Below the pieces are notes generated by a model, which was not told the DNA's origin, did not search any database, and was given only the letters and a program-made list of their open reading frames with translations. From positions 124,001 to 188,000 of IMG/VR virus record IMGVR_UViG_3300020578_000006: a DNA stretch of 64,000 nucleotides; one strand, 5' to 3'. This document shows positions 29,363 to 56,359 of the stretch, in pieces. How positions within the stretch are numbered: position 1 is the first letter of the stretch; each line of letters opens with the position of its first letter. The translations under genes were made by a program, and so were the position numbers.

Positions 29363-30241
29363 ATGGACTTAGATAGTAAGTTAATTTTTGAGGCATACTC
29401 TCAAGCTAAATCAAAAATCTTGACAGAAGCTCCTATAGAGATGTCTGGTGACATTACAACAGAGCCTATAACTCAAAAAACTATGCCTGGGCAAGGAAAA
29501 GCATATGGAGCTGGTGCAATTGCAAAGATTGCCGTAGCTACAAAAAAGACGGAGGAACAAATTGGAGAAGATATGGCAAACTTTATTAAAGGTCATCCTG
29601 AACTTACAAAAAAATTAATAGACAATAAAGAGCAACTATATTACCCTGGTGACCCACAAACTTTTATTAATGAGCTTGTACAGGGGAGAAAAGATTATCC
29701 ATCATTTACTCAAAAATTCGGAGTTGTTCGCTCTCAAGCAGGCTTTACTATAAACTATGTTTTAAACTATCTTTTAGGTGCAAAAAAGACAAAGGGTGGC
29801 CTGGTTATGGATGCAGCAAGAAAAAAAGAAGTAAAAGCCGCTAAAGCAGCAGCTGCTCCAAAAACAGAAACAGTTTTTGAAATTGATAAAGCTGTCAAAT
29901 TAGAAAACAAAGCATTAAGACCAATTGTAATGAGCCTACCTGATGATGATGTACCAGAAAAAGAAATTTTAGGCGTTCTAAAGACCGCTATCAACGAATA
30001 TAATGATCGTCCTGGTATTGAACCTCTAAAAATTAAATCTTTTGATTTGTTTGATATTTTAAAGACAGCTGGTGTAATTAAAGAAAAACAAGTTGAGAAA
30101 AAAGCTAAAGAAGGTGAAGGTTCGGGAGAAGTAGAGACAATAGACGAATACCCAGAAGGGGACGATGTTCATATGGCGGCTAAAGAGCTGTTTAATATTA
30201 GAAGTACCCCTGGGGACCCCAACTACGGAGATTTTAGTTAA
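29363..30241 (+). CDS. Hypothetical late protein (MDLDSKLIFE...KILTE)
   Basis: 292-aa ORF with late promoter. Confidence 0.6.
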   Translation: MDLDSKLIFEAYSQAKSKILTEAPIEMSGDITTEPITQKTMPGQGKAYGAGAIAKIAVATKKTEEQIGEDMANFIKGHPELTKKLIDNKEQLYYPGDPQTFINELVQGRKDYPSFTQKFGVVRSQAGFTINYVLNYLLGAKKTKGGLVMDAARKKEVKAAKAAAAPKTETVFEIDKAVKLENKALRPIVMSLPDDDVPEKEILGVLKTAINEYNDRPGIEPLKIKSFDLFDILKTAGVIKEKQVEKKAKEGEGSGEVETIDEYPEGDDVHMAAKELFNIRSTPGDPNYGDFS

Positions 30242-30927
30242 GTAAAAAACGGACTGTTAAAATCAAAATTTGCCACTGAAGTTAATCCTTCTGTTGTGAG
30301 TTCATAGATCACACCCTCTTCTAAAGGTTCGCTGTTTTTAAATCTAACACTACTAAACTCATTTTCGAGCATATTTGCAAAAACTGTACTACCACATCTT
30401 GCTAAATTAACTTTCCTTTCATTGGTGTTTGCTATCCATAATCCGAAAGTACCTTCTAGTTGTGATAATGTTGAAACGATAACTTGAAGGGGATCAAACT
30501 CTCCTTCACCCGAGGCCTCTATAGTGTGTAGCATATATGGTATAATGCTCGAGTCTACTGGGTTCGGCCATTTAGGATTATATTCTTTTTTAATACTATC
30601 AAAGTTGGAAAGAACACCATTATGTGCCACTACCCAGTTTTCATATACAAATGGATGTGATGTTTCACGGGAGAATTTACGCTTGCTAGATGTAGGAGCT
30701 TGAGTGTGTCCGAGATAAAAATACGGCTGTATCTTTTGTTTTTTAATACTCTCATCCAACTCTTTGCTAGCGTCTTTCAAAGAAATGGATCCATTCCACC
30801 TATGAACAACTAAATCACTTGTTGTTGTAAAAATAACTAATGAAGTGGAAAAGCTACCCCTTTTTCTATTCAAATCATATAAATCGAGAAACGATTCTTT
30901 TTTTACAGCTCCAAATATACCGCACAT
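30238..30927 (-). CDS. Class II glutamine amidotransferase (Ntn), QueC-associated
   Basis: MCGIFG (catalytic Cys2), LGHT, HPF, VAHNG, VDS; abuts queC. Confidence 0.88.
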   Translation of the reverse strand: MCGIFGAVKKESFLDLYDLNRKRGSFSTSLVIFTTTSDLVVHRWNGSISLKDASKELDESIKKQKIQPYFYLGHTQAPTSSKRKFSRETSHPFVYENWVVAHNGVLSNFDSIKKEYNPKWPNPVDSSIIPYMLHTIEASGEGEFDPLQVIVSTLSQLEGTFGLWIANTNERKVNLARCGSTVFANMLENEFSSVRFKNSEPLEEGVIYELTTEGLTSVANFDFNSPFFT

Positions 30928-31671
30928 TTAATTATTATAGGTATCGTAGCTTATTATTCTACAGTTATATTTTTCCCAAACAGGCTTTAAGTCTTGTCTA
31001 TAGGGTAAGGGGTCAATATAACCTGCATTAGCAAAACCTTTAATTCTTAATGCACTACTCGGTGAATTTGCATCACATAAATTTTCACCAGAATAACAAG
31101 TATATGTTTTGCTAAATTTTACTTTTAGTCTTACGCCCTCCTTTACTATTTCAGCCTTATCCATTTCTATCAACGGTGCCTCTATTTTTATTCTTGTTTC
31201 TCGGTTCAACGCCAACACACCATTAATAGTAGGCAAAAATTCAGGACTTGCATCCCAATACCCGGCCAAACTATCTACTTTAGTTGCACCGTGATATACA
31301 ATACAAGCGCCTACAGCTTCTGCATAGGATGCAGCAATACTTAAAAATATCATATTACGATTAGGTACGTATGATTTTGGCTGAGCTTCTCCCGCTATCT
31401 GTCTTATATCAGGGGTCTCTATGTCATTGTTTGTAAGACTACTTGTGGGTGCAAGTTTCTTAATAAAAGACGTATCAATAGTCTGCCACTCTTTTATCTT
31501 AAGCTTTTCAACATGGTATTCAGCTAATTTTAATTCTCTTTTATGTCTTTGACCATAATCATATGAAAGTCCAAAAACGTTTTCTGATCCAAATTGCTCA
31601 ACAGCTTTGTACAGTATTACTGTACTGTCCATTCCTCCAGATATAGGAACTACAACCTTATTCTTTTTCAC
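30928..31671 (-). CDS. queC: 7-cyano-7-deazaguanine synthase QueC
   Basis: ISGGMDST PP-loop, YGQRH, YVPNRNMIFLSIA, TYTCY. Confidence 0.95.
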   Translation of the reverse strand: MKKNKVVVPISGGMDSTVILYKAVEQFGSENVFGLSYDYGQRHKRELKLAEYHVEKLKIKEWQTIDTSFIKKLAPTSSLTNNDIETPDIRQIAGEAQPKSYVPNRNMIFLSIAASYAEAVGACIVYHGATKVDSLAGYWDASPEFLPTINGVLALNRETRIKIEAPLIEMDKAEIVKEGVRLKVKFSKTYTCYSGENLCDANSPSSALRIKGFANAGYIDPLPYRQDLKPVWEKYNCRIISYDTYNN

Positions 31672-35763: not shown

Positions 35764-35967
35764 ATGGAGAAAATAATTCAATTCTTTGACCACAATTTAC
35801 CTTGTCCGAGTGAAATTCCTGATTGTGAAAAGAGAAGAGTTGAATATACAGAAAAATTAGATGCATTAAAGAGAAGTGGTGGGTGTACAAAGTGTGCAGA
35901 AAATAGAATTAAAAACGAGTTTATTCTTCAATTACAACACTTAATAAATACTAACCAACTCCGTTGA
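35764..35967 (+). CDS. Small Cys-containing hypothetical protein
   Basis: Probable start MEKIIQFF, 5 nt after AATAAATT; CPSEIPDC...GCTKC. Confidence 0.5.
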   Translation: MEKIIQFFDHNLPCPSEIPDCEKRRVEYTEKLDALKRSGGCTKCAENRIKNEFILQLQHLINTNQLR

Positions 35968-37177
35968 TTTTATTTAAAATTTTTCGTTCAGGGCTTCCGT
36001 ACGGGTGATTAAACAGTTCGTAATAAGTTTCAATATTATCCTCTAACCATCTTTGATCTGCATTTTTACGAGCCGCAGAACAAACATTCATGTATCTACC
36101 CTTCTTACTCAACACATCCCTAACCACCTTTATCATCTCGTCGCCTGTCTTAAATTTAAATTCGGCGTCTTTGTATGTGCAGAGATCTTGGCAAGCAATG
36201 GGAAGACCCAAGCAATTTGCCTCAATCCATTTTAAATCGGATTTGCTTTTATTAAACGTATTATCCTGTAGAGGCGCAACAAGCATATTCACTTTAAGAT
36301 TTTTTAGCTTTTCACCATAATTATACAGATTAACCCAAGGGTGAAACTCCACTAGGCCCCTCTCGACTAGAGGTCTTAGCGGTAGCGGAAACGCGCCTAA
36401 GAACACCCACTGAAATTCATTGTAAGTATCATATATTGCCTTAATAACGTGAGCAAAATCGTCATTTTGCTCTACTCTATTCTCAACATCAAAATGTGCG
36501 CCTGATCCTGCATATAAAATTCTTGGCTTGTTTTTATAGGTATCATAGTTCGAGCTGATACTCTTTTCATCATAAAACCTGCCTAGCCAGAACTTAGGAG
36601 GAAAGTTAGGAATAATTGTAATGTTTTTATGACCTGTTTTTTCCGCATAATAGTCTTTCATGAATTGACATGTAACAGTAATCTCATTGCAAAGAGACAT
36701 AATCTCCTGTGCATTTTTACGAATTTCGGGATCTACGAAAGCTGTTTTAAATTTATTGTAATCAGGTATGTCTTCATGAAATACTAAATCATCAATCTCA
36801 TATATAATTCTGAAACCGTGGTGTTGCGACACCTCTTTTAAGAATTTAACAAACTGCAGCTGTGAAGATGTAGCTTGTCTTTGAACTCTAACCACCTTAA
36901 CATTCTGGTACCATCTTGGGTCTAGAACCATCACTGTACTACCATGAACAGTCATCCGGCCAAAAGCATTAAGCAAATGCTCTGGCCAAAGCATTCTCCA
37001 AAATCCACAACCTGAATAATCTGCATAATATTGTATTGCTCTAGGTAAATTAACATCCGGAGGCGGTGAGTTATCTGGCTGTAGAACAGGCTTTTGTGGT
37101 GAGCTAGGTATGTTTAATGTACCGGCAAGACCAGATTGACGTAGTATTGGGGGTGTAAATTCTCCGGTGAAAAACAT
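35951..37177 (-). CDS. GT-B-fold glycosyltransferase (GT4-like)
   Basis: SGCGFWRM, YEIDD, ITVTC, VAPLQDNTFNKSKSDLKWIEA. Confidence 0.8.
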   Translation of the reverse strand: MFFTGEFTPPILRQSGLAGTLNIPSSPQKPVLQPDNSPPPDVNLPRAIQYYADYSGCGFWRMLWPEHLLNAFGRMTVHGSTVMVLDPRWYQNVKVVRVQRQATSSQLQFVKFLKEVSQHHGFRIIYEIDDLVFHEDIPDYNKFKTAFVDPEIRKNAQEIMSLCNEITVTCQFMKDYYAEKTGHKNITIIPNFPPKFWLGRFYDEKSISSNYDTYKNKPRILYAGSGAHFDVENRVEQNDDFAHVIKAIYDTYNEFQWVFLGAFPLPLRPLVERGLVEFHPWVNLYNYGEKLKNLKVNMLVAPLQDNTFNKSKSDLKWIEANCLGLPIACQDLCTYKDAEFKFKTGDEMIKVVRDVLSKKGRYMNVCSAARKNADQRWLEDNIETYYELFNHPYGSPERKILNKINGVG

Positions 37178-40059: not shown

Positions 40060-40677
40060 TTAAGCGTTACTTTGATTATATACACTATTATCTAAAACTC
40101 CATGGTCTTTTGTAAAGACCCTAATTCCTGTCTCTTCTTCATCTCTATTAATAAGACTATCATAATTACGCTCTCTGAAGTCGGCAATTATTTGATGATG
40201 CTTCTTTTCTTTTTTAATTCTGCTAATAAATGCGTGAAAAGCAATAGTTGTAAAATAACTAAAAGGACTAAAGCCGTGGTCAAGTTTAAACTTTTTATAT
40301 TTTAAAGCCTGATACATTTTGACTATAGCGTCGCCCATCATTTCATCTCTATAGCTATAATTAATAAAATTAGGGGCAAACGATAGCCCGTAAGCAATTC
40401 TTTTTATTGCATCAGCAAGATAATCTGTAAGGTTATTAGATTTATAGTACTTACGAATTTCGTCCTCGAACTGCTTACTATTTACATAGTGCGGCTTCTC
40501 AGAAGGTTTTAGTTTTTTAGTAGTATTTTTAGTAGCGGAAGGCTCTACTTCACCGGTAATAGAGGCTACTACTGTCTTAATTAACTTATCATCAGGTACT
40601 GTATCATCTAGTTCAATCTTTTTAGACTTTGCTAGTTGTTTATCTTTTTTAAGCTTCTGAGGTTTTTTCTTTATCAT
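40060..40677 (-). CDS. gp55: Late transcription sigma factor gp55
   Basis: HYVN...IAYGLSFAPNFINYSYRDEMMGDAI...PFSYFTTIAFHAFISRIKKEKK. Confidence 0.95.
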   Translation of the reverse strand: MIKKKPQKLKKDKQLAKSKKIELDDTVPDDKLIKTVVASITGEVEPSATKNTTKKLKPSEKPHYVNSKQFEDEIRKYYKSNNLTDYLADAIKRIAYGLSFAPNFINYSYRDEMMGDAIVKMYQALKYKKFKLDHGFSPFSYFTTIAFHAFISRIKKEKKHHQIIADFRERNYDSLINRDEEETGIRVFTKDHGVLDNSVYNQSNA

Positions 40678-42595: not shown

Positions 42596-42811
42596 ATGAT
42601 AACATTTAAACAATTTGTAATGAATGAAGAAAATGTAGCCGGGGACGGAGGTGTTTTTGGATCAGCTGCTAGTATGGGACATGGAGGTGATGTCGGCAAT
42701 ACTGATTTTTACGCACCCGGTGCAGCATTTTTGGCCAAACCTCTTTTTAAAGTAAAAGGCAAAAAAAATAAAATACTTGTACAAAGAAGAAATAAGTTTA
42801 AATACTTCTGA
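42596..42811 (+). CDS. Small putative head-packaged protein (MITFKQFVMNE)
   Basis: True start probably ATG 42596 (in frame with track ORF 42392); capsid-targeting-like N-terminus. Confidence 0.55.
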   Translation: MITFKQFVMNEENVAGDGGVFGSAASMGHGGDVGNTDFYAPGAAFLAKPLFKVKGKKNKILVQRRNKFKYF

Positions 42812-43227
42812 TGGACCTAGGTCATTGGATTTTAAAAGAGGGTATATCTTTTAATGAATCGTCATTTGGATTCATTTATGAGATATGCAATACAGTTACA
42901 GGTAGAAAATATGTAGGTAAAAAGCAATGTCAGAGTAAACTAAAGCGTAAACCCTTAAAGGGCAAGAAAAATAAAAGAATAGAAATAAAAGAGTCTGATT
43001 GGAAAAGCTATACAGGGTCGTCAAAAGAGCTTAATGAAGATATTGAAAAGTACGGTAAAGACAAATTTACTTTTACTATATTACATGCATGTGGGTCTAA
43101 ATGGGAATTAGGATATAGAGAAATAAAAGAGCAGATAGAAAGAGATGTAATCTTAAGAGATGATTATTATAATGGCATTCTAAATGTCAGGATAGGGACG
43201 CCGCCTAAGAATTTTAGTATTGACTAG
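42811..43227 (+). CDS. denA: GIY-YIG endonuclease (T4 EndoII/DenA-like)
   Basis: GFIYEICN...RKYVGKK...SDWKSYTGSS...YYN. Confidence 0.8.
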   Translation: MDLGHWILKEGISFNESSFGFIYEICNTVTGRKYVGKKQCQSKLKRKPLKGKKNKRIEIKESDWKSYTGSSKELNEDIEKYGKDKFTFTILHACGSKWELGYREIKEQIERDVILRDDYYNGILNVRIGTPPKNFSID

Positions 43228-43797: not shown

Positions 43798-44154
43798 ATG
43801 AAGTTTTTAGCTAAGCTAGCAGAAGAATATAATAAACTAGAAGTTGAAAAGCCTCAATGGGTGGAAGAATATGTTACACCCACAACACCATCTTCAACAG
43901 TTGCAACCACACCCTCTACATCAATAACAGGTACTAAGCCAGGTAGTAATCTAGGTAAAGCCATACAAGACACTCTTGATGTTCAAATTGACCCGGAATT
44001 GGCTAAGAAAAAAGAAGAATTAGATAATGTTTATAAGCAAGTAGCGGATGCCCTTAAGAAAAAGGCAATGGACGCAACAAATAAGCTTAAACAAACATCG
44101 AGTGAATTAGCCGCTACCCCAACGACAGCAGTGCCGTCGGTTCCAGCGGTATGA
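43798..44154 (+). CDS. Hypothetical late protein (MKFLAKLAE), Thr/Pro-rich
   Basis: ORF with late promoter. Confidence 0.6.
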   Translation: MKFLAKLAEEYNKLEVEKPQWVEEYVTPTTPSSTVATTPSTSITGTKPGSNLGKAIQDTLDVQIDPELAKKKEELDNVYKQVADALKKKAMDATNKLKQTSSELAATPTTAVPSVPAV

Positions 44155-44495
44155 AATTTAATAAATTACTAGAAACAAAATATAGAGAGCTTTTCGAGCA
44201 AGTACCTCCTCAAGATTTAAACATACCTGCTCCGGAAGCTCCTGTAGCTGCACCGGCGCCGGCTGCTGCTGTTCCTCCAGCTGAACCGCCTCAGCAGAAG
44301 CCATTAACACCTGAAGGCGAAGTATTTTTAATTAATCTTATCCGTAAAGCCTTGTTTATGAACCCTGATGATCTAGGATTAAAGACAATTAAGGAGTTAC
44401 CAGAAGTAAATGCAAAAAACGCGTCTGAGATTTTAGATAAGATTGTCAAGTTAATGCAAGTAGAAGCTATTGATTTGGATGTAAATACGAAATAA
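44151..44495 (+). CDS. Hypothetical late protein (MKFNKLLE), Pro/Ala-rich
   Basis: ATGA-coupled ORF. Confidence 0.6.
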   Translation: MKFNKLLETKYRELFEQVPPQDLNIPAPEAPVAAPAPAAAVPPAEPPQQKPLTPEGEVFLINLIRKALFMNPDDLGLKTIKELPEVNAKNASEILDKIVKLMQVEAIDLDVNTK

Positions 44496-44549
44496 TTAAA
44501 AAGTATTCTAATACTATTGACGTTATTACTAATAAGGAAGTTGGTGGTC

Positions 44550-44557
44550 AATAAATA
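44550..44557 (+). promoter_or_regulatory. Late promoter AATAAATA
   Basis: 5 nt before ATG 44563. Confidence 0.65.
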
Positions 44558-44562
44558 ATATT

Positions 44563-45447
44563 ATGAATAGGGACATTAAGTTATTGTTTGAGGCTTATAA
44601 TAGTATTAAAGAGGCAGAAGATACTAACATAGACACCTTTCATAAAGAATTGGCCAAACAATGGGCTAGTTTATTCTTAGATAAATTACATGAGTATCCT
44701 ATTACCAGTAGATCGGCACACTTAGAAAGATTGCTTGATGGTTCATTAGAAGTTTTTAAGAAGTATATTCTAGATGATATTAAATCTAAAAAACTATCTT
44801 ATTTAAAGGCAGACGCTTTTTCAAAAAGCGAAGATGCTCAAAGCATTGTAAAAAAATTCACAGTAGTAAGTGGAGGTGTAGATAACACCAGTGATGTAGG
44901 TTTTGATTTGAGTGAAGTGGACCACGAGCAAGCCCAGAGCTTGCAAGATGTAGTAGACAGAACAATTGAAGACATGGAGAATGATGAAGATTTTGCAGAT
45001 ACTTTTCCTCAAGAATACAGAGAATTTAAGAACAATATGTTTATTATGTCCACCGATAGTGGTGATTTTGTGGCTGTACTTCCAGGGCATTTAGACGAGA
45101 AGCAAGTATTTGCAAAATTGGCATCAGCTTTCAGTGAAGATAAAAAAGGCCTATCAGATCAAGAATATCACCAAGCCCGTAAATTTGGGCTTGAAAGCGC
45201 AGGAGAAGTGGTCGGTAAAGGCCCTATAAAGATTCAGCTGACTAAAGACCAGACTTTATTATGCACAAGAGATGGACGGGAGCAAGAAGTAAAGTTCGTT
45301 AAAGGTGTTATATTTAATTGTGATGAATGGGTAGGGGATTATTATCATTGTGAATCAAAGAAATATGGTGGTGTTGCCGTATTTCCTCCAGACATTAAGC
45401 TATTAAGCGCCCCAGAGGGCACAATTACTCATCTAACTCCAGAGTAA
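44563..45447 (+). CDS. Hypothetical acidic late protein (MNRDIKLLFE)
   Basis: 294-aa ORF with late promoter. Confidence 0.6.
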   Translation: MNRDIKLLFEAYNSIKEAEDTNIDTFHKELAKQWASLFLDKLHEYPITSRSAHLERLLDGSLEVFKKYILDDIKSKKLSYLKADAFSKSEDAQSIVKKFTVVSGGVDNTSDVGFDLSEVDHEQAQSLQDVVDRTIEDMENDEDFADTFPQEYREFKNNMFIMSTDSGDFVAVLPGHLDEKQVFAKLASAFSEDKKGLSDQEYHQARKFGLESAGEVVGKGPIKIQLTKDQTLLCTRDGREQEVKFVKGVIFNCDEWVGDYYHCESKKYGGVAVFPPDIKLLSAPEGTITHLTPE

Positions 45448-45483
45448 ATGTAAAGGTTTACCTGTTTACTTAGTTTATTAACA

Positions 45484-45491
45484 TATAAATA
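45484..45491 (+). promoter_or_regulatory. Late promoter TATAAATA
   Basis: 4 nt before GTG 45496. Confidence 0.8.
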
Positions 45492-45495
45492 ACAA

Positions 45496-46665
45496 GTGGC
45501 TTACATATCCCTAAAAGACCTATATTTTGAAGACGTAGCCGGCATAACTGTGCCTCCGCTGCCTAGACAACAGGTAAATACACCCCCGGTCAAAGTTTTT
45601 GTGCCGGGTGATGAATATGTACCTCAAACACCGTGGACAGAATACGATATATCTCCAGATTTATTTCAAAAAACAGCAGGTGGGGATAAGGAAGGTACTG
45701 GTAGAGGAGAATACAGTATAGCATGTATATTGTATGGGTTCAAGACTAAGGAACAAGTGGATAAAGCATCTGGTAGAATTATACAAGGCGGGGGAGCTTC
45801 TTTTGACGTGGTAGGACCAGATAAACGCAAGTATGAGGTAAAAGAATTAACTAAAGCTGTACGTACAGGAACGGAAGGAACCGGGGTTTTTACAGATATC
45901 CTTAATTCGACAATAGAATTGTTAGATGCTATACTAAAGGAATTTAATACGCTAGACGCCCAGGGTAAGCAGACCATAAACAATATGATTCTAAATAGCA
46001 ATACAGTAAAAAGCACTATTCTTAACAGAAAAAGTCAAAAGGGACATTTTGACGCTATTAAAGACAGGTGGAGCTTAGATGAATATTTAAATGACATAAA
46101 GCGTAAAGCCCCAAGAGAGCTCTCTAAAGGTATTCTTATTTCTCCTATTTTAAATTTAGGTCAATATAAAGAAGAGCGCCCTTACGTAATTTTTTCCTTA
46201 AAACAATTAGTTGATGTATTAAACGAGATTGCCTCTACACAAGTCGCAACAGGCAATGAAGAAGGTACACCTAATCCAGCTGTAAGGGATATCGCCGATA
46301 CTATCAATAAACATTACAGCGTACAAGGTGATGAGAAAGAAAAAGAATTTTTCAAAAAAGAGGCAGAGAAAATTGATAGGGCATTAATTCAAAAGAGATG
46401 TAAGGAATTTAAAAAATGTACTGATGAATTATCTTTTAGAAAGCAAATAATAGCACTTAATTTGTCAGGAATGCTTAAGCTAATTCAAGATAAAACTCAA
46501 GATATTGTTGAGAATTTATTTCCAAATGATGGGTTATTTGCAGTAAACAGCCAAGGCTTTCAATACATTCCGCATAGTAAGTTAAATACCTATCTTGCTT
46601 TTGATACAATAAGTTCAGGAAGTGTAAAGATCAAGCAAAAAATAGCTAGTAATGAAACCATTTAA
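45496..46665 (+). CDS. Hypothetical late protein with PD-(D/E)xK-like nuclease motif
   Basis: GRGEY...FDVVGPDKRKYEVK pattern. Confidence 0.5.
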   Translation: MAYISLKDLYFEDVAGITVPPLPRQQVNTPPVKVFVPGDEYVPQTPWTEYDISPDLFQKTAGGDKEGTGRGEYSIACILYGFKTKEQVDKASGRIIQGGGASFDVVGPDKRKYEVKELTKAVRTGTEGTGVFTDILNSTIELLDAILKEFNTLDAQGKQTINNMILNSNTVKSTILNRKSQKGHFDAIKDRWSLDEYLNDIKRKAPRELSKGILISPILNLGQYKEERPYVIFSLKQLVDVLNEIASTQVATGNEEGTPNPAVRDIADTINKHYSVQGDEKEKEFFKKEAEKIDRALIQKRCKEFKKCTDELSFRKQIIALNLSGMLKLIQDKTQDIVENLFPNDGLFAVNSQGFQYIPHSKLNTYLAFDTISSGSVKIKQKIASNETI

Positions 46666-47278
46666 ACAATTTCTTACAGAACAAAATGGTAGTAGTATAG
46701 GTTTTTTTCCTGGAGCATTTAAACCGCCTCACAAAGGCCATTTTGATACTGCAAAACAAGCTGCAACAATTAATGATGCAGCAGTAATTTTAGTTTCAAA
46801 AATAGATAGAGATAACATATCAGCCGACGACTCAATGTTTGTCTGGGAGACTTATAAACAGTATCTACCAAAAAACTTGTATGTGTTTTCAGTTCAAGGG
46901 TCCCCTGTTTTAACTATATATCAAATTACAGACATCCTTAACAATGGTGTTTTTACCCCCACACCTAGAGCCCCTACCCCTCTACCTGCGGCAACAGAAA
47001 TAGCAGATTTGTTAAGAAAGTTTAACCCACCTTACAGTGTTAACCTTTATGCAAGTCAAGAAGATACAGAAAGATTTAAATCATTCTATGGACCAAGTAA
47101 AGAGATTTTCCAAGGAAAAAACGTACAAAGTATTGCTATGAAAGATATTTCTCGACTAGCGTCTGCGACAGATGCACGTGCAGCATTGTTAAAAAATAAT
47201 GCAAAGGGGTTTCATTCTTTATTACCAAATATTGCAGATCAAAGTAAAGAGGCTATCTTTAATCGATTAAAAAAATGA
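46652..47278 (+). CDS. HIGH-motif nucleotidyltransferase (NMNAT/PPAT/cytidylyltransferase-like)
   Basis: FPGAFKPPHKGH (HxGH) and C-terminal SATDAR (SSTxxR-like). Confidence 0.82.
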   Translation: MKPFKQFLTEQNGSSIGFFPGAFKPPHKGHFDTAKQAATINDAAVILVSKIDRDNISADDSMFVWETYKQYLPKNLYVFSVQGSPVLTIYQITDILNNGVFTPTPRAPTPLPAATEIADLLRKFNPPYSVNLYASQEDTERFKSFYGPSKEIFQGKNVQSIAMKDISRLASATDARAALLKNNAKGFHSLLPNIADQSKEAIFNRLKK

Positions 47279-48636
47279 AATCTTTTAAACAATTCTTGCT
47301 CAAAGAGCAAATTATAAAAGAAGAGCGTACTTCTTATTTTTCACCACATCTCTCACATTTAGAAGACTTAGCTGTAGAGAACGGTAAAGCAGGATTTAAA
47401 GATTTTCTGACACATGTAAATTTAATTTCTAAAAAGATTCAAGGCTACGAATCAGAGCAAGAAATTAATGCAAAAATAGATGGAAGCCCTGCTATTTTGT
47501 TTGGTATTGATCCAAAAACTAAGACTTTTTTTATATCATTAAAATATGTAGTGGATGAATCTACCGATACAATAAAAGAAAATGCAAAACTCTTTCATAC
47601 ATCAGAAGAGATAGATCAAGCTATGTCGGATAGACCAGATTTTGCATCTAGGCTTAAAAATTTATTAGAGCAGTTAACACCAGCTTATGATAATTCTGGG
47701 TTAATATATCAAGGTGATGTTTTATACGCTAGTCAAGAAGATAAAAAAAGAGTGAAAATAGGTACAGAAGAGTTTATTACTTTTGAACCAAACACTATAA
47801 TGTATGCTATTCCTATGGATGATAAATCAGAACTATTTCATAAAGTATTAAACTCTTCAGTGGGGGTAGTTGTTCATGATAGTTTTAAAGGGGTAGTAGA
47901 TAAAGAATCGGGGATAATAAAACTTGTACCGGCGTCTAAAAACATTGACAGTTTGATTGCTAGTAGTACAAATTCAAAAGCATTCATAAAAGGTAGCAAT
48001 TATCGTACTTTTGCTTTTGATATACCCGATAAATTTTTTGATAATCTTAATACACTTATAGTGGACGCTAGTAAGCATATAAACTCTATTTCTGATGAAT
48101 TTAATAATGAATATGTGTCGCCTGGTAGGGGGGCGCCTTCTAGCCAAATCCTAGATATGTTAAAGCGCTATTTAAATAAGCAACTTGACCTAGAGGACTC
48201 AGGACTGTTTGGGGCAGCAAAGACTAGCGGTAGATTAAACTTTAATGCATTTTACAAGGGGTTTCAACAATATGTTGAGTCGCAGATAACAAAAGGTATA
48301 GAAGGACTTGGACCTAAGGGTCAAGCCCAACGCCAGCAAAGACTTAGTATTGTTCAAAGCTTTTTACAGAACAACGCAGCTAATTTTGAGCATCTATTAA
48401 CAGCTACCTTTGAGATGGTAAAAATTAAGTACCTTATTTTTAATATACTGTCTCAACTAGATACTAAGCTAACACAGCATGCTTTTTACAGACTTCCCGA
48501 TGGCTCGTATGTTAAAACAAAAGATGAAGGCTATGTTTTGTTTGCTGGTAATAATCAAGTAAAGATTGTAGATAGAGTAGATTTTTCTAAGATGAACCGC
48601 TTAGTTGGCGGTAGGCGCAGAACCCTTATTACCTGA
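47275..48636 (+). CDS. Ligase-like covalent nucleotidyltransferase (KxDG; probably DUF6267-type)
   Basis: HLEDL, AKIDGSPA (motif I), YQGD, DEGYVL (motif IV), QVKIVDR (motif V). Confidence 0.62.
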   Translation: MKSFKQFLLKEQIIKEERTSYFSPHLSHLEDLAVENGKAGFKDFLTHVNLISKKIQGYESEQEINAKIDGSPAILFGIDPKTKTFFISLKYVVDESTDTIKENAKLFHTSEEIDQAMSDRPDFASRLKNLLEQLTPAYDNSGLIYQGDVLYASQEDKKRVKIGTEEFITFEPNTIMYAIPMDDKSELFHKVLNSSVGVVVHDSFKGVVDKESGIIKLVPASKNIDSLIASSTNSKAFIKGSNYRTFAFDIPDKFFDNLNTLIVDASKHINSISDEFNNEYVSPGRGAPSSQILDMLKRYLNKQLDLEDSGLFGAAKTSGRLNFNAFYKGFQQYVESQITKGIEGLGPKGQAQRQQRLSIVQSFLQNNAANFEHLLTATFEMVKIKYLIFNILSQLDTKLTQHAFYRLPDGSYVKTKDEGYVLFAGNNQVKIVDRVDFSKMNRLVGGRRRTLIT

Positions 48637-49215
48637 TTCGTTAATAGCATTTAATGCTTCAAGATTAAAAATTGTTTGGCGTAATACAGATTCTAGAACT
48701 TCTTTACCCTCACCGTACAGCATATCTCTTATTTTAGATACTATTTTTAATTCATGTGAATTTTCATCTGCATCAAACTCACCGTCTTTTCTAAATTTGT
48801 TATATTCAAGATAGTTTTTAACACTCTCAATATAGCTTGCAGCTAATGTAATTTTACTGAATACCCAAGGTTCTAAATCTTGATTGTCTTTTAGTAGATT
48901 GTAAAGAGCTTTTGACCCGTTATGAATTTTATATAGTTCGTTCTTTGCCATATCAGCTTCAGATTCACCAGAACCGGTAGAGGGTTCAACAGGGGTAATT
49001 TTTGAAGAATCTTCACAATTTTCACTATTTTTACACTGTAAACAATCTTCACCATCTTCACACCCACAAGATTTTTTATTAAGCTTTATTACTGTTGATG
49101 TGTTATTGGAAGGTACCATATTCGTGGTTTCGGCCGCGGGGCCCAGGTTTAATTCATTAACTACAATCTGGGTATAAGCTTCGGAAATTTTTTCTAATTC
49201 ACCTTTTCTGCTCAT
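48601..49215 (-). CDS. Hypothetical late protein (MSRKGELEKISE) with Cys cluster
   Basis: ORF with late promoter; EADMAKNEL...PWVFSKIT helical segment. Confidence 0.6.
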   Translation of the reverse strand: MSRKGELEKISEAYTQIVVNELNLGPAAETTNMVPSNNTSTVIKLNKKSCGCEDGEDCLQCKNSENCEDSSKITPVEPSTGSGESEADMAKNELYKIHNGSKALYNLLKDNQDLEPWVFSKITLAASYIESVKNYLEYNKFRKDGEFDADENSHELKIVSKIRDMLYGEGKEVLESVLRQTIFNLEALNAINESGNKGSAPTAN

Positions 49216-49221
49216 TTTATA

Positions 49222-49229
49222 TATTTATT
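49222..49229 (-). promoter_or_regulatory. Late promoter AATAAATA
   Basis: 6 nt before ATG 49215. Confidence 0.65.
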
Positions 49230-49231
49230 CA

Positions 49232-49239
49232 AATAAATA
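49232..49239 (+). promoter_or_regulatory. Late promoter AATAAATA
   Basis: 8 nt before ATG 49248. Confidence 0.6.
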
Positions 49240-49247
49240 CATAATAT

Positions 49248-49664
49248 ATGCGTAGTTACAAAGAATTTTTCTATGAACAAATACTAGGGGCTACGGAAGG
49301 TATTACTATTCAACATGTTGGAAACGTTAGAGCCACTGTAGACACTGGTAACAGCGGTTATAATGTACTTCATGCAGAAATAATTGATGGTGCAAAAGAG
49401 GGACATGTAAAATTTAAAACAGTAAACGACAAAGTGTTAGAATTGCCTGTAAAAGAGTTTATAACGGTATCCGGAAATAATAATACCAACGATAGACCAG
49501 TAGTAGAGTTAGACTGTAGCTTGGGCCAAGAACAATTTAATAAAGTTCCTTTCAGCCTTGCGGACAGAAGTCAGCAAGATACCCCTGTTCTCTTAAGTAA
49601 AGATTTTATAAAATTAAATGGCGGTGTTGTTAATGTTAATATTAACAGCGAAATTAAAAAATAA
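49248..49664 (+). CDS. Retropepsin-like aspartic protease (RimB/'ATP-dependent Zn protease' family-like)
   Basis: ATVDTG catalytic motif, RPVVEL, FSLADRS...PVLL; N-terminus MRSYKEFFYE. Confidence 0.75.
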   Translation: MRSYKEFFYEQILGATEGITIQHVGNVRATVDTGNSGYNVLHAEIIDGAKEGHVKFKTVNDKVLELPVKEFITVSGNNNTNDRPVVELDCSLGQEQFNKVPFSLADRSQQDTPVLLSKDFIKLNGGVVNVNINSEIKK

Positions 49665-49991: not shown

Positions 49992-50648
49992 TTAGATTAA
50001 TTTTCGGTTTTGTGCGAACTCAATAAACTTGTAAAATTCGTTTCTAGAATTATCTTTATCATCTAGAAAAGCACCAGACATTCTTGCGGTACGCATAGTT
50101 GAATCATGTCTAATGCCACGGTTAGAGCAGCATGTGTGAGCGGCCTCAATCATAACAGCTACTCCTTTATTCTTAATACAAACTTCATCAATATACTTGT
50201 GAATTTGCATTGTAAGGTTTTCTTGTACTTGAGGGCGACGAGAAAACCAATCCACAATACGATTTAATTTACTCAATCCAATCACCTTACCGTCCTTTGC
50301 AGGAATATAAGCAACGTGGGCAAACCCCATAAAAGGTGCGTGGTGGTGTGAGCAGAGCGATGTAACTTTAATATTGGTTTGAGATACAATACCATCATAC
50401 TTATCTACATTATCAAACGCGGTAATCTTAGGCGGCTCACTATAACATCCCCAGGCAAAGTCTTCTACAAATGCCTTAGCAACCCTAAAGGGGGTGTTGG
50501 CACTATTTGGATCGTTTCTCCAATCATAACCCAAAGCGTCCATGTATGCTTCATACGCGGCCGCGGCCTTTAGTATAATTTGATTTCTCTCTTCCTCGGA
50601 ATGTGGATGGTTATGATTGGCAAAAGCTAGCTTTTTCTTATTAAACAT
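49992..50648 (-). CDS. folE: GTP cyclohydrolase I FolE
   Basis: TPFRVAK, SLCSHHHAPF, GLSKLNR, RPQVQENLT, HTCCSNRG. Confidence 0.96.
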   Translation of the reverse strand: MFNKKKLAFANHNHPHSEEERNQIILKAAAAYEAYMDALGYDWRNDPNSANTPFRVAKAFVEDFAWGCYSEPPKITAFDNVDKYDGIVSQTNIKVTSLCSHHHAPFMGFAHVAYIPAKDGKVIGLSKLNRIVDWFSRRPQVQENLTMQIHKYIDEVCIKNKGVAVMIEAAHTCCSNRGIRHDSTMRTARMSGAFLDDKDNSRNEFYKFIEFAQNRKLI

Positions 50649-52340: not shown

Positions 52341-52994
52341 ATGTCATTTCAATTTGAAAGTACAAAAATTATTGATTTAGGTAGTTGTGCGTTTAGACAA
52401 TGGAGAGCTGATAGTCATTGTAAGTTTATTCATGGCTACAGGCTGCAAGCTAAATTCTGGTTTGGTTGTAACAATTTAGACGAAAAGAATTGGGTTGTAG
52501 ATTTTGGAGGTTTAAAGCAATTAAAATTAACTTTAGAGAAACAGTTTGATCACACATTATGCATTGCTGGTGATGATCCTTTATTAGAAGATTTTAAAAA
52601 CCTACATAACAAAGGTGCTGTTGATTTAAGAATTATGCCAACAGGTGTAGGTATAGAGCGTACAGCACAATGGTGTTTTATAAATGCTGACATTATTATA
52701 AGATCCCAGACAAATAATAGATGTTGGGTTGAAAGAGTAGAGGTATGGGAGCATGATAAAAATTCTGCTATTGTAACGCGAGACTATGTTACAGTACCAC
52801 AACATGATCCTTATGTTTCAGAGAAACATAATGCAGAACAATTTGAACTACCTTTTCAACCACAGGCTACCACGGTTGCTGCTCCTGCTCCAGAGATACA
52901 AAACGCAGTTACAAGGAGTAATGCAGCTGCGGTCGGTAATGAAATGTCTACCGGTTGGGGCAATCCATTTGGTGGTACTAGCTGGGGTTCTTAA
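52341..52994 (+). CDS. queD: 6-carboxytetrahydropterin synthase QueD with long C-terminal tail
   Basis: SHCKFIHGY, WVVDFGGLK, FDHT, VEVWEHDKN. Confidence 0.92.
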   Translation: MSFQFESTKIIDLGSCAFRQWRADSHCKFIHGYRLQAKFWFGCNNLDEKNWVVDFGGLKQLKLTLEKQFDHTLCIAGDDPLLEDFKNLHNKGAVDLRIMPTGVGIERTAQWCFINADIIIRSQTNNRCWVERVEVWEHDKNSAIVTRDYVTVPQHDPYVSEKHNAEQFELPFQPQATTVAAPAPEIQNAVTRSNAAAVGNEMSTGWGNPFGGTSWGS

Positions 52995-53774: not shown

Positions 53775-54521
53775 ATGTCTTTAGATACAACAATATTTTT
53801 AAGTGATGATAAGGTTTTTTATACAATAGAAGGGGAAGGCGAATATGTAGGTCACCCATCGGTGTTTATGAGATTATCGATGTGTAATTTAACGTGTAAA
53901 GGGTTTGCTTCTGCTGATTCACCTCACGGGTGCGATAGCTTTATAAGTTGGTCAGTAAAAAATCATTTTAAAATTAAAGACATTTTAGATTTACTGGATA
54001 ATGAGGGGTATACAAAGCATTTACGTGAAGGGGCCATCTGGAAGATTACAGGGGGTGAGCCTCTAATTCAACAGAAAAACCTATTAGAACTGGTTAGAGA
54101 GTTTGCTAAGCGTAATGGGTTTATACCAAAAATAGATTTTGAGACTAATGCAACTATTCAACCTTTAGATGACTGGACAGCATACCGGGTAACATATACA
54201 ACCTCTCCAAAGCTATCTAATAACGGTGACCCAGAAGAAAAGCGCTATAAACCTGCCGTACTTAAATGGCACGTTAGTGCCGGTTCCGGATTCAAATTTG
54301 TAATTAACGAGCAAAAAGACTTAGACGAAGTATATGAGAAGTATATCAACCACCCAGATATATTGTTGCCAAGACATAGAGTATGGTTAATGCCGTGTTG
54401 TGGTAGTAGGCAAGAGCATACAGAAAAAGCTTCTATGGTAGCAGAATTATGTAAAACACATGATATGAAATTTAGTCCAAGGTTGCAGCTAGTAATTTGG
54501 GATAAAGCATTAAAAGTATAG
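53775..54521 (+). CDS. queE: 7-carboxy-7-deazaguanine synthase QueE (radical SAM)
   Basis: FYTIEGEG, RLSMCNLTC...CD, ITGGEPL, FETNAT, TSPKL, SPRLQ. Confidence 0.94.
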   Translation: MSLDTTIFLSDDKVFYTIEGEGEYVGHPSVFMRLSMCNLTCKGFASADSPHGCDSFISWSVKNHFKIKDILDLLDNEGYTKHLREGAIWKITGGEPLIQQKNLLELVREFAKRNGFIPKIDFETNATIQPLDDWTAYRVTYTTSPKLSNNGDPEEKRYKPAVLKWHVSAGSGFKFVINEQKDLDEVYEKYINHPDILLPRHRVWLMPCCGSRQEHTEKASMVAELCKTHDMKFSPRLQLVIWDKALKV

Positions 54522-55663: not shown

Positions 55664-56359
55664 ATGCGTATAGCTTTTAGCGGAGCCGCTTGTACAGGTA
55701 AAACAACAACAATTAGCGCCTTTTTAGCCAAATGGCCAAATTACAAGTCTCCAGAAACTTCATACAGAACATTAATATCAAATAATAAGCATAGTAAGAG
55801 AACAGATAAAAAGATTCAACGTAGTATTTTGCAGTTTATGGTAGATCAACAAAAAGGATATACCTTACATGATAATATTGTTTATGATAGGTGTGGGCTT
55901 GATAACGTAGTATATTCGCTATGGTGCCATGATAAGGGTATAAAAGGGTTTAACAAGCAATATATAGATGAATCAATAGAACTTGTAAAAGAGAGTATGA
56001 GAACCTTGGATATTATATTTCTATCAACCAGAGATTTAATGGGACCTATAGTCAATAATAATATAAGAGAAGTTGACCCAGAGTTTGTTATGGAAACTGA
56101 TAATATTTTTAGGGCTATTTACAGTCAGCTTCTATCAACAGGTGCTTCACCCTTCTTTCCTCCTCACGATAGCCCGGGGCTAATTGAACTTAAAGGGACA
56201 ACAGAAGAAAGAATAGATCTTATTAGTATGTATATTACCCCAGAAGGTAGTATGTATGGTGAAGAACAAAGCCTAGTAAATATGGATGAAATCGCCAAAA
56301 TGGAAAGCCTTCTAAGAGAACAAAAAGGGTTAGCTGCTAAAGAAAAAGGTATTTTGTAA
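55664..56359 (+). CDS. P-loop nucleotide kinase (dNMP/thymidylate kinase or NadR-type AAA_28)
   Basis: IAFSGAACTGKTT, IVYDRCGLD. Confidence 0.75.
   Translation: MRIAFSGAACTGKTTTISAFLAKWPNYKSPETSYRTLISNNKHSKRTDKKIQRSILQFMVDQQKGYTLHDNIVYDRCGLDNVVYSLWCHDKGIKGFNKQYIDESIELVKESMRTLDIIFLSTRDLMGPIVNNNIREVDPEFVMETDNIFRAIYSQLLSTGASPFFPPHDSPGLIELKGTTEERIDLISMYITPEGSMYGEEQSLVNMDEIAKMESLLREQKGLAAKEKGIL

Follow-up and report, generated by a model that had tools for sequence, protein, structure and literature searches.

A T4-like phage from lake water carries two overlapping genes, here named ORF A and ORF B, whose products are predicted to be a HIGH-motif nucleotidyltransferase (NTase) and an enzyme with a polynucleotide-ligase fold, respectively. 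Both proteins begin with a peptide resembling the capsid-targeting sequence (CTS) of T4 internal proteins. We propose that the two genes form a coupled late pair, that the tags deliver the ligase-fold enzyme and the adenylyltransferase, and that the chemistries of the two enzymes are linked, a reading to which we assign a probability of about 0.55. The window analyzed was a stretch of 64,000 nt (positions 124,001 to 188,000 of IMG/VR record IMGVR_UViG_3300020578_000006) from a phage contig of about 230 kb; all coordinates below are those of the window.

A trio of overlapping genes follows a T4-type late promoter element

ORF A (46652–47278, 208 aa) and ORF B (47275–48636, 453 aa) are encoded on the + strand, and both reading frames, with their N-termini and motifs, were found where a preliminary description made from the sequence had placed them. 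The ATGA at 47275–47278 comprises the stop codon of ORF A and the start codon of ORF B. Upstream, ORF X (45496–46665, +; 389 aa, GTG start) extends with its 3′ end 14 nt into ORF A and is translationally coupled to it. ORF X is an orphan that had no match in families, phages or PDB and is missing from the closest relatives, although those retain the ORF A/ORF B pair.

The T4-type late-promoter element TATAAATA (45484–45491, +) lies 4 nt upstream of this trio. The window contains 13 late-promoter sites, six of them intergenic and positioned 4–10 nt ahead of start codons; the intergenic sites include those ahead of structural-module genes. A gp55-like sigma gene, recognized by a weak Sigma70_r2 match, is located at 40060–40677. 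Based on the promoter sequence, we propose that ORF X, ORF A and ORF B are expressed late from this element.

ORF B is predicted to have a polynucleotide-ligase fold

The Pfam scan of ORF B returned DUF6267 (PF19782; residues 25–441, 166.4 bits against a cutoff of 27, E 1.6e-48) and nothing besides. When the AF2 model of the protein (pLDDT 93.9, pTM 0.91) was used in a fold search with VIA-align, the first 50 PDB entries were all RNA/DNA ligases, and among 48,161 PDB representatives the 21 best were exclusively polynucleotide ligases. The scores were Z 8.2–8.7 for NgrRnl, which according to the tool's own note is at the edge of the range reached by unrelated models, the ranking nonetheless being exclusive, and Z 7.6 for both REL1 and T4 Rnl2. 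DNA ligases matched at Z about 6 and capping enzymes further down, at Z 4.8–5.3. About 185 residues, scattered over model residues 21–445, align to ligase NTase domains (about 172–192 for NgrRnl (Rnl5), T4 Rnl2 and Trypanosoma REL1). Foldseek also favored ligases, weakly; 86 of 100 language-model neighbors, with DUF6267 excluded, came from RNA-ligase families; and the AFDB clusters include an 'RNA ligase domain-containing protein'. The structure prediction suggested in the preliminary description thus returned ligase folds, T4 Rnl2 among them, for the second enzyme that it had called RNA/DNA-ligase-like.

Sequence and profile methods found no link between DUF6267 and any ligase, and hhalign of DUF6267 against a 20-sequence T4 Rnl2-family profile gave a probability of ≤0.12%. 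Membership in the Rnl2-type RNA ligases (PF09414 plus PF18043) was rejected, as there is neither profile similarity nor an Rnl2 C-terminal domain.

Conservation was analyzed in 109 diverse homologues, mostly 22–30% identical to the query. Residues K67, D69, G70, E418, G419 and K430 are invariant in this set, and Q146, D148, V421, D433 and R434 are at least 90% conserved; across these aligned sequences, the conservation of the motifs is above chance. Motif I, K67-I-D-G70 (47473–47484, +), contains the candidate nucleotidyl-lysine. Candidate motif III, Y145-Q-G-D148 (47707–47718, +), follows at a spacing of 81 aa, comparable to K35–E99 in the T4 Rnl2 family alignment. By sequence conservation only, candidate motifs III, IIIa, IV and V occur in ligase order at D148, F170/P172/N173, E418-G419 and K430, with motif IV (E418-G-Y-V421) and the motif V-like V429-K430-I-V432-D-R434 both within 48526–48570 (+). 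The four motifs listed in the preliminary description are all present, and K67, D69, G70, E418-G and K430 in them are invariant, but the candidate motif V departs from the usual K-x-K of ligases: the family pattern is V-K430-(I/L)-V432-D-R434, with a single conserved lysine against K225-x-K227 in T4 Rnl2.

Like nick-sealing RNA ligases, ORF B has a KxDG-type lysine motif and an EG(Y)V motif IV followed by a lysine-containing strand. Its EGYV is identical to that of T4 Rnl2 (EGYVLK), and the spacings from motif I to Lys90, D148 and F170 are similar to those of Rnl2. Unlike these ligases, it shows no detectable sequence or profile similarity, has a conserved N-terminal H-L-x-H-L-E-D segment and carries a helical insertion of about 155 residues (roughly 245–400; 48007–48474, +) between motif IIIa and the motif IV/V strands. 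In the predicted secondary structure, the helices of this insertion span residues 252–392, after the N-terminal beta core. ORF B lacks an OB domain as well as the Rnl2 C-terminal and Rnl5 N-terminal domains. The model and the motifs support the assignment of ORF B to the ATP-dependent polynucleotide-ligase (lysine nucleotidyltransferase) fold, as a divergent member with an insertion; this fold was previously unrecognized for DUF6267.

DUF6267 is recurrently linked to a HIGH nucleotidyltransferase

The order of ORF A and ORF B is the same in relatives. Gene-neighborhood analysis covered 45 loci with sufficient flanking sequence: in 26 of them a HIGH NTase adjoins or is fused to DUF6267, and in the other 19 none was detected nearby. 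Of 147 family representatives, 14 are single-chain fusions of the two, as is S-PM2 d138, and both orders occur. The coupling claimed in the preliminary description from the ATGA overlap extends to conserved adjacency and fusion, and the similar pair that it mentions for T4-like cyanophages was located as T4-GC 71, which adjoins a 'cytitidyltransferase'. We propose that ORF A and ORF B constitute one functional unit.

T4 Pnkp and Rnl1 are early cytoplasmic proteins that are not known to be packaged. Like this pair and the neighborhoods described by Iyer et al. 2021, some loci place the ligase fold together with other domains of the RNA-repair type. These comprise a P-loop kinase domain, HAD-like (phosphatase) neighbors and a Pol-beta NTase, the last fused to the HIGH NTase, and they correspond to the partners reported for phage RNA ligases (PMC7824862). 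Unlike T4 Pnkp and Rnl1, the constant partner of DUF6267 is the HIGH NTase, which does not belong to known repair sets, and no kinase-phosphatase gene lies beside the ORF A/ORF B pair in the window.

The distribution of the family raises a second reading, in which DUF6267 would be the 'missing' nick-sealing replication or repair ligase of T4-like phages without gp30, cytoplasmic or acting on DNA during packaging. The NTase would then supply an adenylate donor such as NAD+, and the tag would merely add a virion-associated copy. In cyanomyoviruses, the DUF6267 gene sits in the replication module after gp43-UvsX-gp41-MazG, and homologues of g30 and rnh have been reported absent from these phages, with undetected distant homologues raised as a possibility (PMC2984593). 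DUF6267 was found in cyanophages and in Pelagibacter, Methylophilales and Stenotrophomonas phages and in no Escherichia-type T4 relative, and a tblastn search with gp30 returned no Synechococcus phages among the ten commonest organism names. DNA ligases also fit the fold, but RNA ligases are the closer structures, the OB domain is absent and the promoter motif of the operon in the source phage is late rather than middle, so that we regard this reading as unlikely.

ORF A is a HIGH-signature nucleotidyltransferase of the NMNAT/PPAT class

Motifs and predicted fold confirmed that ORF A belongs to the HIGH-signature nucleotidyltransferases of the NMNAT/PPAT class, with adenylyltransferase- and cytidylyltransferase-like features, in agreement with the preliminary description. 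The HxGH signature H27-K-G-H30 (46730–46741, +) and the ISxTxxR-like second signature S171-A-T-D-A-R176 (47162–47179, +) are both present. H27, G29, H30 and R176 are invariant across 61 NTase sequences, and S171 and T173 are at least 90% conserved. The protein passed the TIGR00125 cutoff (30.9 bits, cutoff 27.7) and scored just below that of PF01467 (20.1 bits, cutoff 21). With the AF2 model (pLDDT 93.9), the top Foldseek matches were NadM NMNAT (E 4e-7) and archaeal NMNAT, and the VIA fold search returned PPAT at Z 12.9 and NMNAT at Z 12.6. PPAT, NMNAT and citrate-lyase ligase tie as fold matches; as PPAT and NMNAT fit the fold equally well, the acceptor is not separable and the substrate not assignable from the fold. 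ORF A shares the Rossmann-type HIGH fold, HxGH and an SxTxxR-like motif with NadM, NadR, archaeal NMNAT, NadD and CoaD. Unlike NMNATs and CoaD, it is only 10–20% identical to them, has an extra segment at about residues 99–127 and belongs to a purely viral family that falls under all equivalog cutoffs.

These matches bear on a further possibility, namely that ORF A is a genuine NMNAT and acts together with the NadR-type AAA_28 kinase encoded at 55664–56359 in the window to rebuild NAD+ on entry as a counter-defense, DUF6267 being an accessory nucleotidyl-lysine enzyme of the same pathway and no polynucleotide joiner. Besides the Foldseek ranking and the AAA_28 gene, it is favored by NadR as the best PDB profile match of ORF A, by one NTase homologue fused to a P-loop kinase in a NadR-like arrangement, by known phage NMNAT fusions with Nudix or kinase domains (PMC7824862) and by the authors of the cyanophage proteomes, who proposed NAD synthesis upon entry. 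We nevertheless consider it improbable, given that PPAT is an equally good fold match, that the NCBIfam NMNAT models scored 14–20 bits against cutoffs of 127–449, missing every equivalog cutoff widely, and that neither a Nampt nor a Nudix partner turned up in the portion of the window that was searched. The ligase fold and the recurrent fusion in both orders would also go unexplained.

Both proteins begin with a capsid-targeting-like peptide

The pattern M-K-x-F-K-x-F-L-x-E opens both proteins. The ORF A tag (residues 1–10, MKPFKQFLTE; 46652–46681, +) resembles a T4 CTS propeptide ending in L-T-E and provides F4, F7, L8 and E10. The CTS-like propeptide of ORF B (residues 1–11, MKSFKQFLLKE; 47275–47307, +) provides F4, F7, L8 and E11, unlike the T4 tag with its glutamate at position 10, and is followed by a disordered linker to about residue 20–25 that holds a further I-K-E site (I14-K-E16). 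Both tags lie outside the folded domains. In the ORF A model, residues 4–10 form a helix at pLDDT of about 60 and structural alignments start at residues 13–15; in the ORF B model, pLDDT is 65 and 57 over residues 1–20, residues 4–10 are helical and alignments start from residue 21–22.

Among T4 internal proteins, IPI starts with MKTFKEF and IPII and IPIII with MKTYQEFIAE; a close ORF A homologue starts with MKTFKEFLTE. The decapeptide thus occurs in the same register, M-K-x-(F/Y)-x-x-F-(L/I)-x-E. Unlike the small basic internal proteins of T4, the tagged proteins here are enzymes of 200–450 residues or more. Positions 4 and 7 of the T4 tag determine targeting, and positions 8 and 10 processing (PMC9026906). 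These four positions are conserved in the ORF A and ORF B families; in the ORF A family logo, F4 and F7 each reach 86%, with L/V at position 8 and E at position 9 or 10.

In 80 related IMG/VR loci, the tag pattern is present at the starts of 86 of 1051 genes (8.2%) and at 0.19% of internal methionines, a 44-fold enrichment at gene starts. It is carried by DUF6267, the NTases and at least 18 other neighbor families, indicating that it is portable among unrelated proteins. Four genes of the window carry it from residue 1 onward, all of them inside 44151–49664. A RimB-like retropepsin (49248–49664, +; 138 aa) starts with MRSYKEFFYE and matched PF05618 (E 6e-8) and NCBIfam retropepsin models; its gene is kept beside the ORF A/ORF B pair in relatives. 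A Pro/Ala-rich protein of 114 aa (44151–44495, +), which starts with MKFNKLLE, is possibly an internal-protein-like member of the tagged set. No prohead protease gene was found within the window.

Published mass spectrometry detected tagged ORF A homologues in CsCl-purified virions of three cyanophages, lending weight to the capsid-targeting peptides of the preliminary description. These are S-CREM2 gp154 (MKNFSSFLTE), S-SZBM1_140 (MRFRQFIIE) and S-SCSM1 ORF91 (MKSFLQFLKE), which with a protein of S-CBWM1 are virion-associated and 'NMNAT-like/cytidylyltransferase'. The three share the tag with ORF A and match the cyanophage-type NTase profile at E 1e-46 to 1e-62; they are longer (286–409 aa) and distant to ORF A (E 5e-7 to 8e-9 with the ORF A profile). 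S-SZBM1_140 adjoins a DUF6267 gene, and the untagged product of this neighbor, S-SZBM1_141, is absent from the S-SZBM1 virion list. No virion is known to contain a tagged DUF6267 protein, and the cyanophage virion papers did not remark on the tag or the ligase-like partner and describe no processing of the N-termini.

The decapeptide might instead be a docking tag that brings the proteins to one shared hub, for example the sliding clamp or the replisome, or be a translation-start feature of AT-rich genes. Many tagged enzymes do occur in one neighborhood, itself also within replication modules, the tag codons are AT-rich and we take the core F-x-x-F-L to resemble clamp-binding peptides loosely. 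Both variants are very improbable in our view: the register does not vary relative to Met1 and agrees with the experimentally mapped T4 determinants, it is the amino acids that are conserved, F/Y and L/I/V replacing one another, the three tagged homologues are in purified virions and one untagged neighbor is not, and the operon lies behind a late promoter motif. The sequence comparisons support a T4-type head-loading signal on both proteins, and ORF A and ORF B therefore probably enter the host together with the phage DNA.

Discussion

In the proposed mechanism of a delivered, chemically linked pair, the CTS propeptide would carry each protein into the prohead core, where the prohead protease would cut it off after the (L/I)-x-E site, and the mature enzymes would be ejected into the host along with the DNA. 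ORF B would then seal 5′-phosphate/3′-OH breaks in RNA or RNA/DNA duplexes via Lys67-AMP. ORF A would form a 5′-5′ pyrophosphate-linked adenylate, by default presumed to be NAD+ made from NMN and ATP; this adenylate would supply or regenerate both the nucleotide donor of the ligase and the host NAD pool. We infer that both proteins are packaged and lose their tags, that both are active on the substrates named, and that their reactions are linked.

That ORF B is a capping-type or protein-modifying enzyme, guanylylating or adenylylating RNA 5′ ends or a host protein, seems highly implausible: capping enzymes have the same fold, and the single-lysine motif V and unusual insertion would allow a different acceptor, but the best matches are ligases throughout, a methyltransferase or triphosphatase partner was not seen, and the kinase, HAD-like and Pol-beta NTase partners of other loci are of the end-repair type.

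Because the cyanophage DUF6267 orthologues have no N-terminal extension and are encoded in the replication module, the core function of DUF6267 would need no packaging, and the family might supply the ligase that seems to be missing from cyanomyoviruses.

Gene organization and predicted timing of expression

ORF A (46652-47278, 208 aa), the HIGH-motif nucleotidyltransferase (NTase), and ORF B (47275-48636, 453 aa), the DUF6267 protein, were both found to be genuine open frames, and the ATGA coupling claimed in the preliminary description was confirmed, with nucleotides 47275-47278 common to the stop of ORF A and the start of ORF B. The orphan gene directly upstream, ORF X (45496-46665), runs 14 nt into the start of ORF A. 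The window contains 13 copies of the motif TATAAATA, a number not above chance overall; six of them fall between genes, 4-10 nt ahead of a start codon (2928-2935, 10917-10924, 14581-14588, 17331-17338, 29345-29352 and 45484-45491). One of the start codons is that of ORF X (45496), and the others include those of structural-module genes. The placement of TATAAATA before start codons, together with the gene overlaps, indicated that X-A-B is probably transcribed as a late operon, which would suit proteins that are loaded into the prohead. Because TATAAATA lies only 4-10 nt from the start codons, late transcripts of this phage may be leaderless or nearly so, with no space for a Shine-Dalgarno sequence. 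A gp55-like late sigma factor is encoded in the window (weak match).

ORF X was considered as a third conserved member and rejected. The nearest relatives lack it, BLAST did not relate it to the genes at the upstream position in cyanophages, Melnitz or DLP_6, and no match was obtained in phages or the PDB. Pfam scans of the families occupying the upstream position in other loci gave nothing useful. The last 36 nt of ORF B are shared with a conserved gene on the opposite strand (48601-49215, -) for a 204-aa protein with Cys-rich and acidic stretches; this protein matched no family, and relatives have the gene too.

Phage background

The source of the window is a T4-like myovirus of ~34% G+C, for which ~230 kb is the longest contig on record and whose sequence is contained in at least 20 lake-water metagenome runs; a DNA-level search of the phage collection gave no match. 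T4-like genes in the window encode a gp44-like clamp loader, tail sheath, large terminase, gp41-like helicase, UvsX, gp43 polymerase, gp46/gp47, UvsW-like helicase and primase. Three successive ORFs of ~500 aa in the structural region (4239-9143, -) had no PHROG match at E<=1e-5, although the genes around them are readily identified as T4-like tail and packaging genes. A SegE-type GIY-YIG homing endonuclease gene (42811-43227, +) lies between the UvsY-side genes and the tagged cluster, with a similar gene at the same site in one relative.

The window also encodes 7-deazaguanine synthesis proteins (amidotransferase, QueC, FolE, QueD and QueE) and a 408-aa protein (30238-31671, -; 49992-50648, -; 52341-52994, +; 53775-54521, +; 35951-37177, -), which suggests a modified phage genome. 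The 408-aa protein gave a weak 'glycosyltransferase' PHROG match and might be the DNA transglycosylase. A link between the pair and the 7-deazaguanine genes, which lie around it here, was rejected, because the pair of cyanophages sits in a different gene context.

Capsid-targeting-like N-termini

The T4 capsid-targeting sequence (CTS) comprises ten residues (PMC8442874), of which residues 4 and 7 were assigned to targeting and residues 8 and 10 to processing by amber-suppressor mapping (PMC9026906). T4 IPII and IPIII start with MKTYQEFIAE and IPI with MKTFKEFTST. The proposal that ORF A and ORF B carry CTS-like starts was borne out: both match T4 positions 4, 7 and 8 (F4, F7 and L8), followed by E10 in ORF A and E11 in ORF B, and ORF B has a second I-K-E at residues 14-16. 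The pattern was conserved among relatives of ORF A (n = 61) and ORF B (n = 63), with F/Y at position 4 in 95% and 93%, F/Y at position 7 in 97% and 94%, and, at position 8, L/V in 63% and F in 11% of the former and L/I in 86% of the latter. ORF A relatives mostly carry E at position 9 (65%) or 10 (27%), ORF B relatives have a hydrophobic-hydrophobic-E site at 14-17, and one ORF A homologue starts with MKTFKEFLTE. Both protein models show residues 4-10 as a short helix of low confidence that leads into a disordered linker; the aligned folds start at residues 13-22.

Across 80 loci, the tag was found at the start of 86 of 1051 genes (8.2%) versus 0.19% at internal methionines. Its bearers were 35 DUF6267 proteins, 16 NTases and many unrelated neighbours, one of them with a DxDxT (HAD-type) motif; the tag is portable between unrelated proteins. 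In one relative it stands at the start of small Gly-rich proteins that resemble internal proteins, and cyanophage DUF6267 proteins lack it. Other tagged genes in the window encode a small Pro/Ala-rich protein (44151) and a RimB/RloA-like retropepsin aspartic peptidase (49248-49664, +; start MRSYKEFFYE), which adjoins the pair in relatives too; a packaged protease, if the retropepsin is packaged, would be unusual. A second N-terminal pattern, M-D/N-x-D-x-K-(L/I)-(L/I)-F-E-(A/N)-Y, was observed on unrelated proteins of ~290 aa (29363-30241, + and 44563-45447, + in the window; 17730-18500 in comparison locus L005) and may be another sorting tag. The gene at 29363 is preceded by its own TATAAATA.

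Tagged NTases in cyanophage virions

Proteins named 'NMNAT-like' or 'cytidylyltransferase' are reported by four papers from T4-like cyanophage virions purified on CsCl, and the authors suggest that the virions carry them into the host (PMC10665884, PMC9146016, PMC9602691). The tag and the ligase-like neighbour are mentioned in none of these virion-proteome papers. S-CREM2 gp154 (start MKNFSSFLTE), S-SZBM1_140 (MRFRQFIIE) and S-SCSM1 ORF91 (MKSFLQFLKE) matched the cyanophage-type NTase profile with E values of 1e-46 to 1e-62. The adjoining DUF6267 protein S-SZBM1_141 starts at the conserved HLEHLED segment without a tag, and the tagged _140 is named among the S-SZBM1 virion proteins whereas the untagged _141 is not, which makes the two a weak but telling natural control for the tag. 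No proteome covering a tagged DUF6267 protein was found in the literature search. In S-SCSM1, five consecutive genes (ORFs 89-93; comparison locus L093, 1733-7211) are annotated as virion proteins and only ORF91 starts with the tag; other routes of virion entry, or co-packaging as a complex, may operate there.

ORF A is a predicted NMNAT/PPAT-type nucleotidyltransferase

The HxGH and SATDAR motifs quoted for ORF A were present (H27-K-G-H30 and S171-R176). Sequence models recognized only the N-terminal HxGH region: ORF A scored 20.1 bits against PF01467 (cutoff 21) and 30.9 bits against TIGR00125 (cutoff 27.7), and was far under the cutoffs of all NMNAT, NadD and CoaD equivalog models. A 17-sequence profile matched NadR, PPAT and archaeal NMNAT over the first 50 residues (E 6e-5 to 2e-4). 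The AlphaFold model built from 61 sequences (pLDDT 93.9, pTM 0.89) placed NadM and archaeal NMNAT on top in Foldseek (E 4e-7 to 2e-6) with NadD and PPAT adjacent; NMNAT, citrate-lyase ligase and PPAT tied among Swiss-Prot models, and VIA-align gave Z scores of 12.9 for PPAT and 12.6 for NMNAT. On account of these sequence-model and fold matches, ORF A is assigned as a putative HIGH-signature adenylyl/cytidylyl-transferase of NMNAT/PPAT type, with neither sequence nor fold revealing the acceptor. The usual database name, glycerol-3-phosphate cytidylyltransferase, was disfavoured, since TagD reached only E 0.41 in the PDB profile search, far behind NMNAT/PPAT. The nearest relatives of ORF A form a clade made up of viral sequences only. 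DUF5824 is a regular component of the long NTase proteins and also exists as small tagged proteins that follow the NTase (sources include comparison loci L022, L014, L039 and L012, and Melnitz gp18).

ORF B has a predicted ligase fold

ORF B belongs to Pfam DUF6267 (E 1.6e-48) and phrog_455. A profile search of 1.84 billion representatives gave 2,779 clusters (50% identity) at E<=0.001, and members with a taxonomic record were nearly all viral; DUF6267 is among the larger uncharacterised phage families, and the literature search found no paper naming it. The nucleotidyltransferase motifs read from ORF B were likewise present (K67-G70, Y145-D148, E418-V421 and V429-V432). Across 109 sequences, most of which share 22-30% identity with ORF B, K67, D69, G70, Y177, G197, E418, G419, K430 and F437 were invariant, and near-invariant residues included K90, Q146, D148, F170, P172, N173, H201, V421, D433 and R434. 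DUF6267 proteins fused to Cu/Zn superoxide dismutase were also found (sources include an ESM Atlas cluster).

None of the sequence methods tied DUF6267 to ligases. PDB profile searches with the whole of ORF B or its first 196 residues returned noise only, and hhalign of the DUF6267 profile against T4 Rnl2, T4 gp30 and a T4 Rnl2-family profile gave probabilities <=1.5%, the homologue search for T4 Rnl2 having yielded close relatives only. The structural model (pLDDT 93.9, pTM 0.91) had no Foldseek match at E<=0.001; the best hits, all at E>0.001, included T4 Rnl1, REL1, archaeal RNA ligase, Rnl2 and Lig IV. When the model was aligned by VIA-align to Foldseek's top 1000 chains, all 50 listed entries were polynucleotide ligases, led by NgrRnl (Z 8.3-8.7 over 185 residues) and followed by REL1 (7.6), T4 Rnl2 (7.6), T4 Rnl1 (7.3), Trl1 (6.6) and DNA ligases (~6). 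An independent search of 48,161 PDB representatives gave the identical order, with ligases at ranks 1-21. Since Z scores near 8 can be reached by unrelated models according to the tool's note, the case for a ligase fold rests on the exclusive ranking, not solely on the Z value. The alignment covers model residues 21-445 and leaves out a helical insertion at ~245-400, so that the EGYV and VKIVDR strands come back to the N-terminal core. The ligase fold agrees with two independent leads: 86 of the 100 nearest language-model neighbours outside the DUF6267 clusters were RNA-ligase families, with low scores of 0.69-0.74, and AlphaFold DB clusters beyond DUF6267 itself include an 'RNA ligase domain-containing protein'.

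From the model, we conclude that ORF B has a predicted ligase nucleotidyltransferase fold with a conserved KxDG lysine, nearest to nick-sealing RNA ligases; D148 and K430 would be the equivalents of motifs III and V, respectively. Unlike all described RNA-ligase families, ORF B has an internal helical domain in place of the usual N- or C-terminal appendage, a conserved H-L-x-H-L-E-D segment ahead of motif I, and a motif V with a single lysine.

Pairing and fusion across phages

In close relatives (43-62% identity), the NTase again comes first and its stop overlaps the start of DUF6267, within the same neighbourhood. DUF6267 was found in 110 cultured-phage records; carriers are Synechococcus and Prochlorococcus myoviruses, a Pelagibacter phage, Methylophilales phage Melnitz, Stenotrophomonas DLP_6 and a Pseudoalteromonas phage. 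The family (T4-GC 71) is very widespread in cyanomyoviruses, with 100 cyanophage records. The order there is X, DUF6267, 'cytitidyltransferase', straight after gp43-UvsX-gp41-MazG, which confirms the gene pair of T4-like cyanophages mentioned in the preliminary description. Among 45 IMG/VR loci with enough flanking DNA, the HIGH NTase adjoins or is fused to DUF6267 in 26, nearly always downstream on the same strand. Single-chain fusions exist in both orders, DUF6267-NTase (S-PM2 d138 and the family proteins P0140, P0154, P0191 and P0261) and NTase-DUF6267 (P0156). A strict motif test classed 14 of the 147 family representatives as fusions, eight in one order and six in the other. Fusion partners include both window-type and cyanophage-type NTases. 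The association is strong, not universal. To our knowledge, no earlier work describes a ligase-fold enzyme that pairs, and repeatedly fuses, with a HIGH adenylyltransferase.

Possible functions of the pair

We propose that the pair are late-made, head-loaded enzymes, in which ORF B would form Lys67-AMP and then join 5'-phosphate/3'-OH ends, and ORF A would make a 5'-5' pyrophosphate-linked adenylate. In other phages, partners found with the NTase or near DUF6267 include a Pol-beta-type NTase (comparison locus L031), a Zeta/AAA_33 P-loop kinase (L079) and HAD-like proteins. Pol-beta NTase, P-loop kinase and HAD-like classes accompany RNA ligases in phage RNA-repair sets (PMC7824862). This match of partner classes favours, by analogy, a role in nucleic-acid end repair. 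Cofactor recycling could be the simple link between the enzymes, the ligase consuming an adenylate donor that the NTase remakes.

The A(5')pp(5')N end made by ligases on nucleic acid is the same linkage as in NAD+, so an NMNAT-like enzyme could act on ligase chemistry in two ways. It could remake NAD+ from NMN released by an NAD+-using DUF6267 ligase, or it could add AMP to, or strip AMP from, polynucleotide 5'-phosphates, with DUF6267, with its single motif-V lysine, performing the sealing step. The pair might then work as a ligation system of two enzymes between which adenylate chemistry is divided or recycled, a system that in cyanomyoviruses would be the long-missing replacement of the gp30 DNA ligase and in tagged lineages would be injected or active inside the filling head; we give this full reading a probability of only about 15%.

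Alternatively, ORF B could be a cytoplasmic replication ligase, as g30 and rnh homologues are reported absent from cyanomyoviruses (PMC2984593) and the replication module is where DUF6267 lies in these phages. As for the NTase, it could just as well be a true NMNAT. In a further rival reading, the pair would serve pure NAD+ supply, with ORF A rebuilding NAD+ and DUF6267 not being a joining enzyme. A NadR-type (ribosylnicotinamide-kinase-like) AAA_28 P-loop gene in the window (55664-56359, +), kept in relatives, bears on such NAD salvage, and phage NMNATs fused to kinases are on record (PMC7824862). The tag could also be a docking peptide that recruits enzymes to a hub instead of the head. Lastly, ORF B could be a capping or protein-modifying enzyme that alters an RNA 5' end or a host protein with no strand joining; capping enzymes scored near Z 5 in the independent structural search.

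Implications

Both folds are of known kinds, and the virion association of NMNAT-like proteins in cyanophages was reported before. What appears to be new is the placement of DUF6267 in the ligase fold, the unusual architecture of the family, the systematic way in which it is paired and fused with a HIGH NTase, and the recognition of a T4-type CTS on the pair and neighbouring enzymes across many aquatic phages. The ligase-fold placement gives DUF6267 a testable activity and makes it a concrete candidate for the DNA- and RNA-ligase functions apparently missing in marine and freshwater T4-like phages, and its pairing with a HIGH adenylyltransferase may reveal a new way in which ligase chemistry is supplied or divided. 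Conservation of the T4 capsid-targeting decapeptide extends far beyond the T-even phages, on enzymes and not small internal proteins, which explains the earlier puzzling 'NMNAT-like' matches in virion proteomes. The tag also offers a simple sequence criterion by which injected proteins could be predicted in uncultured phages.
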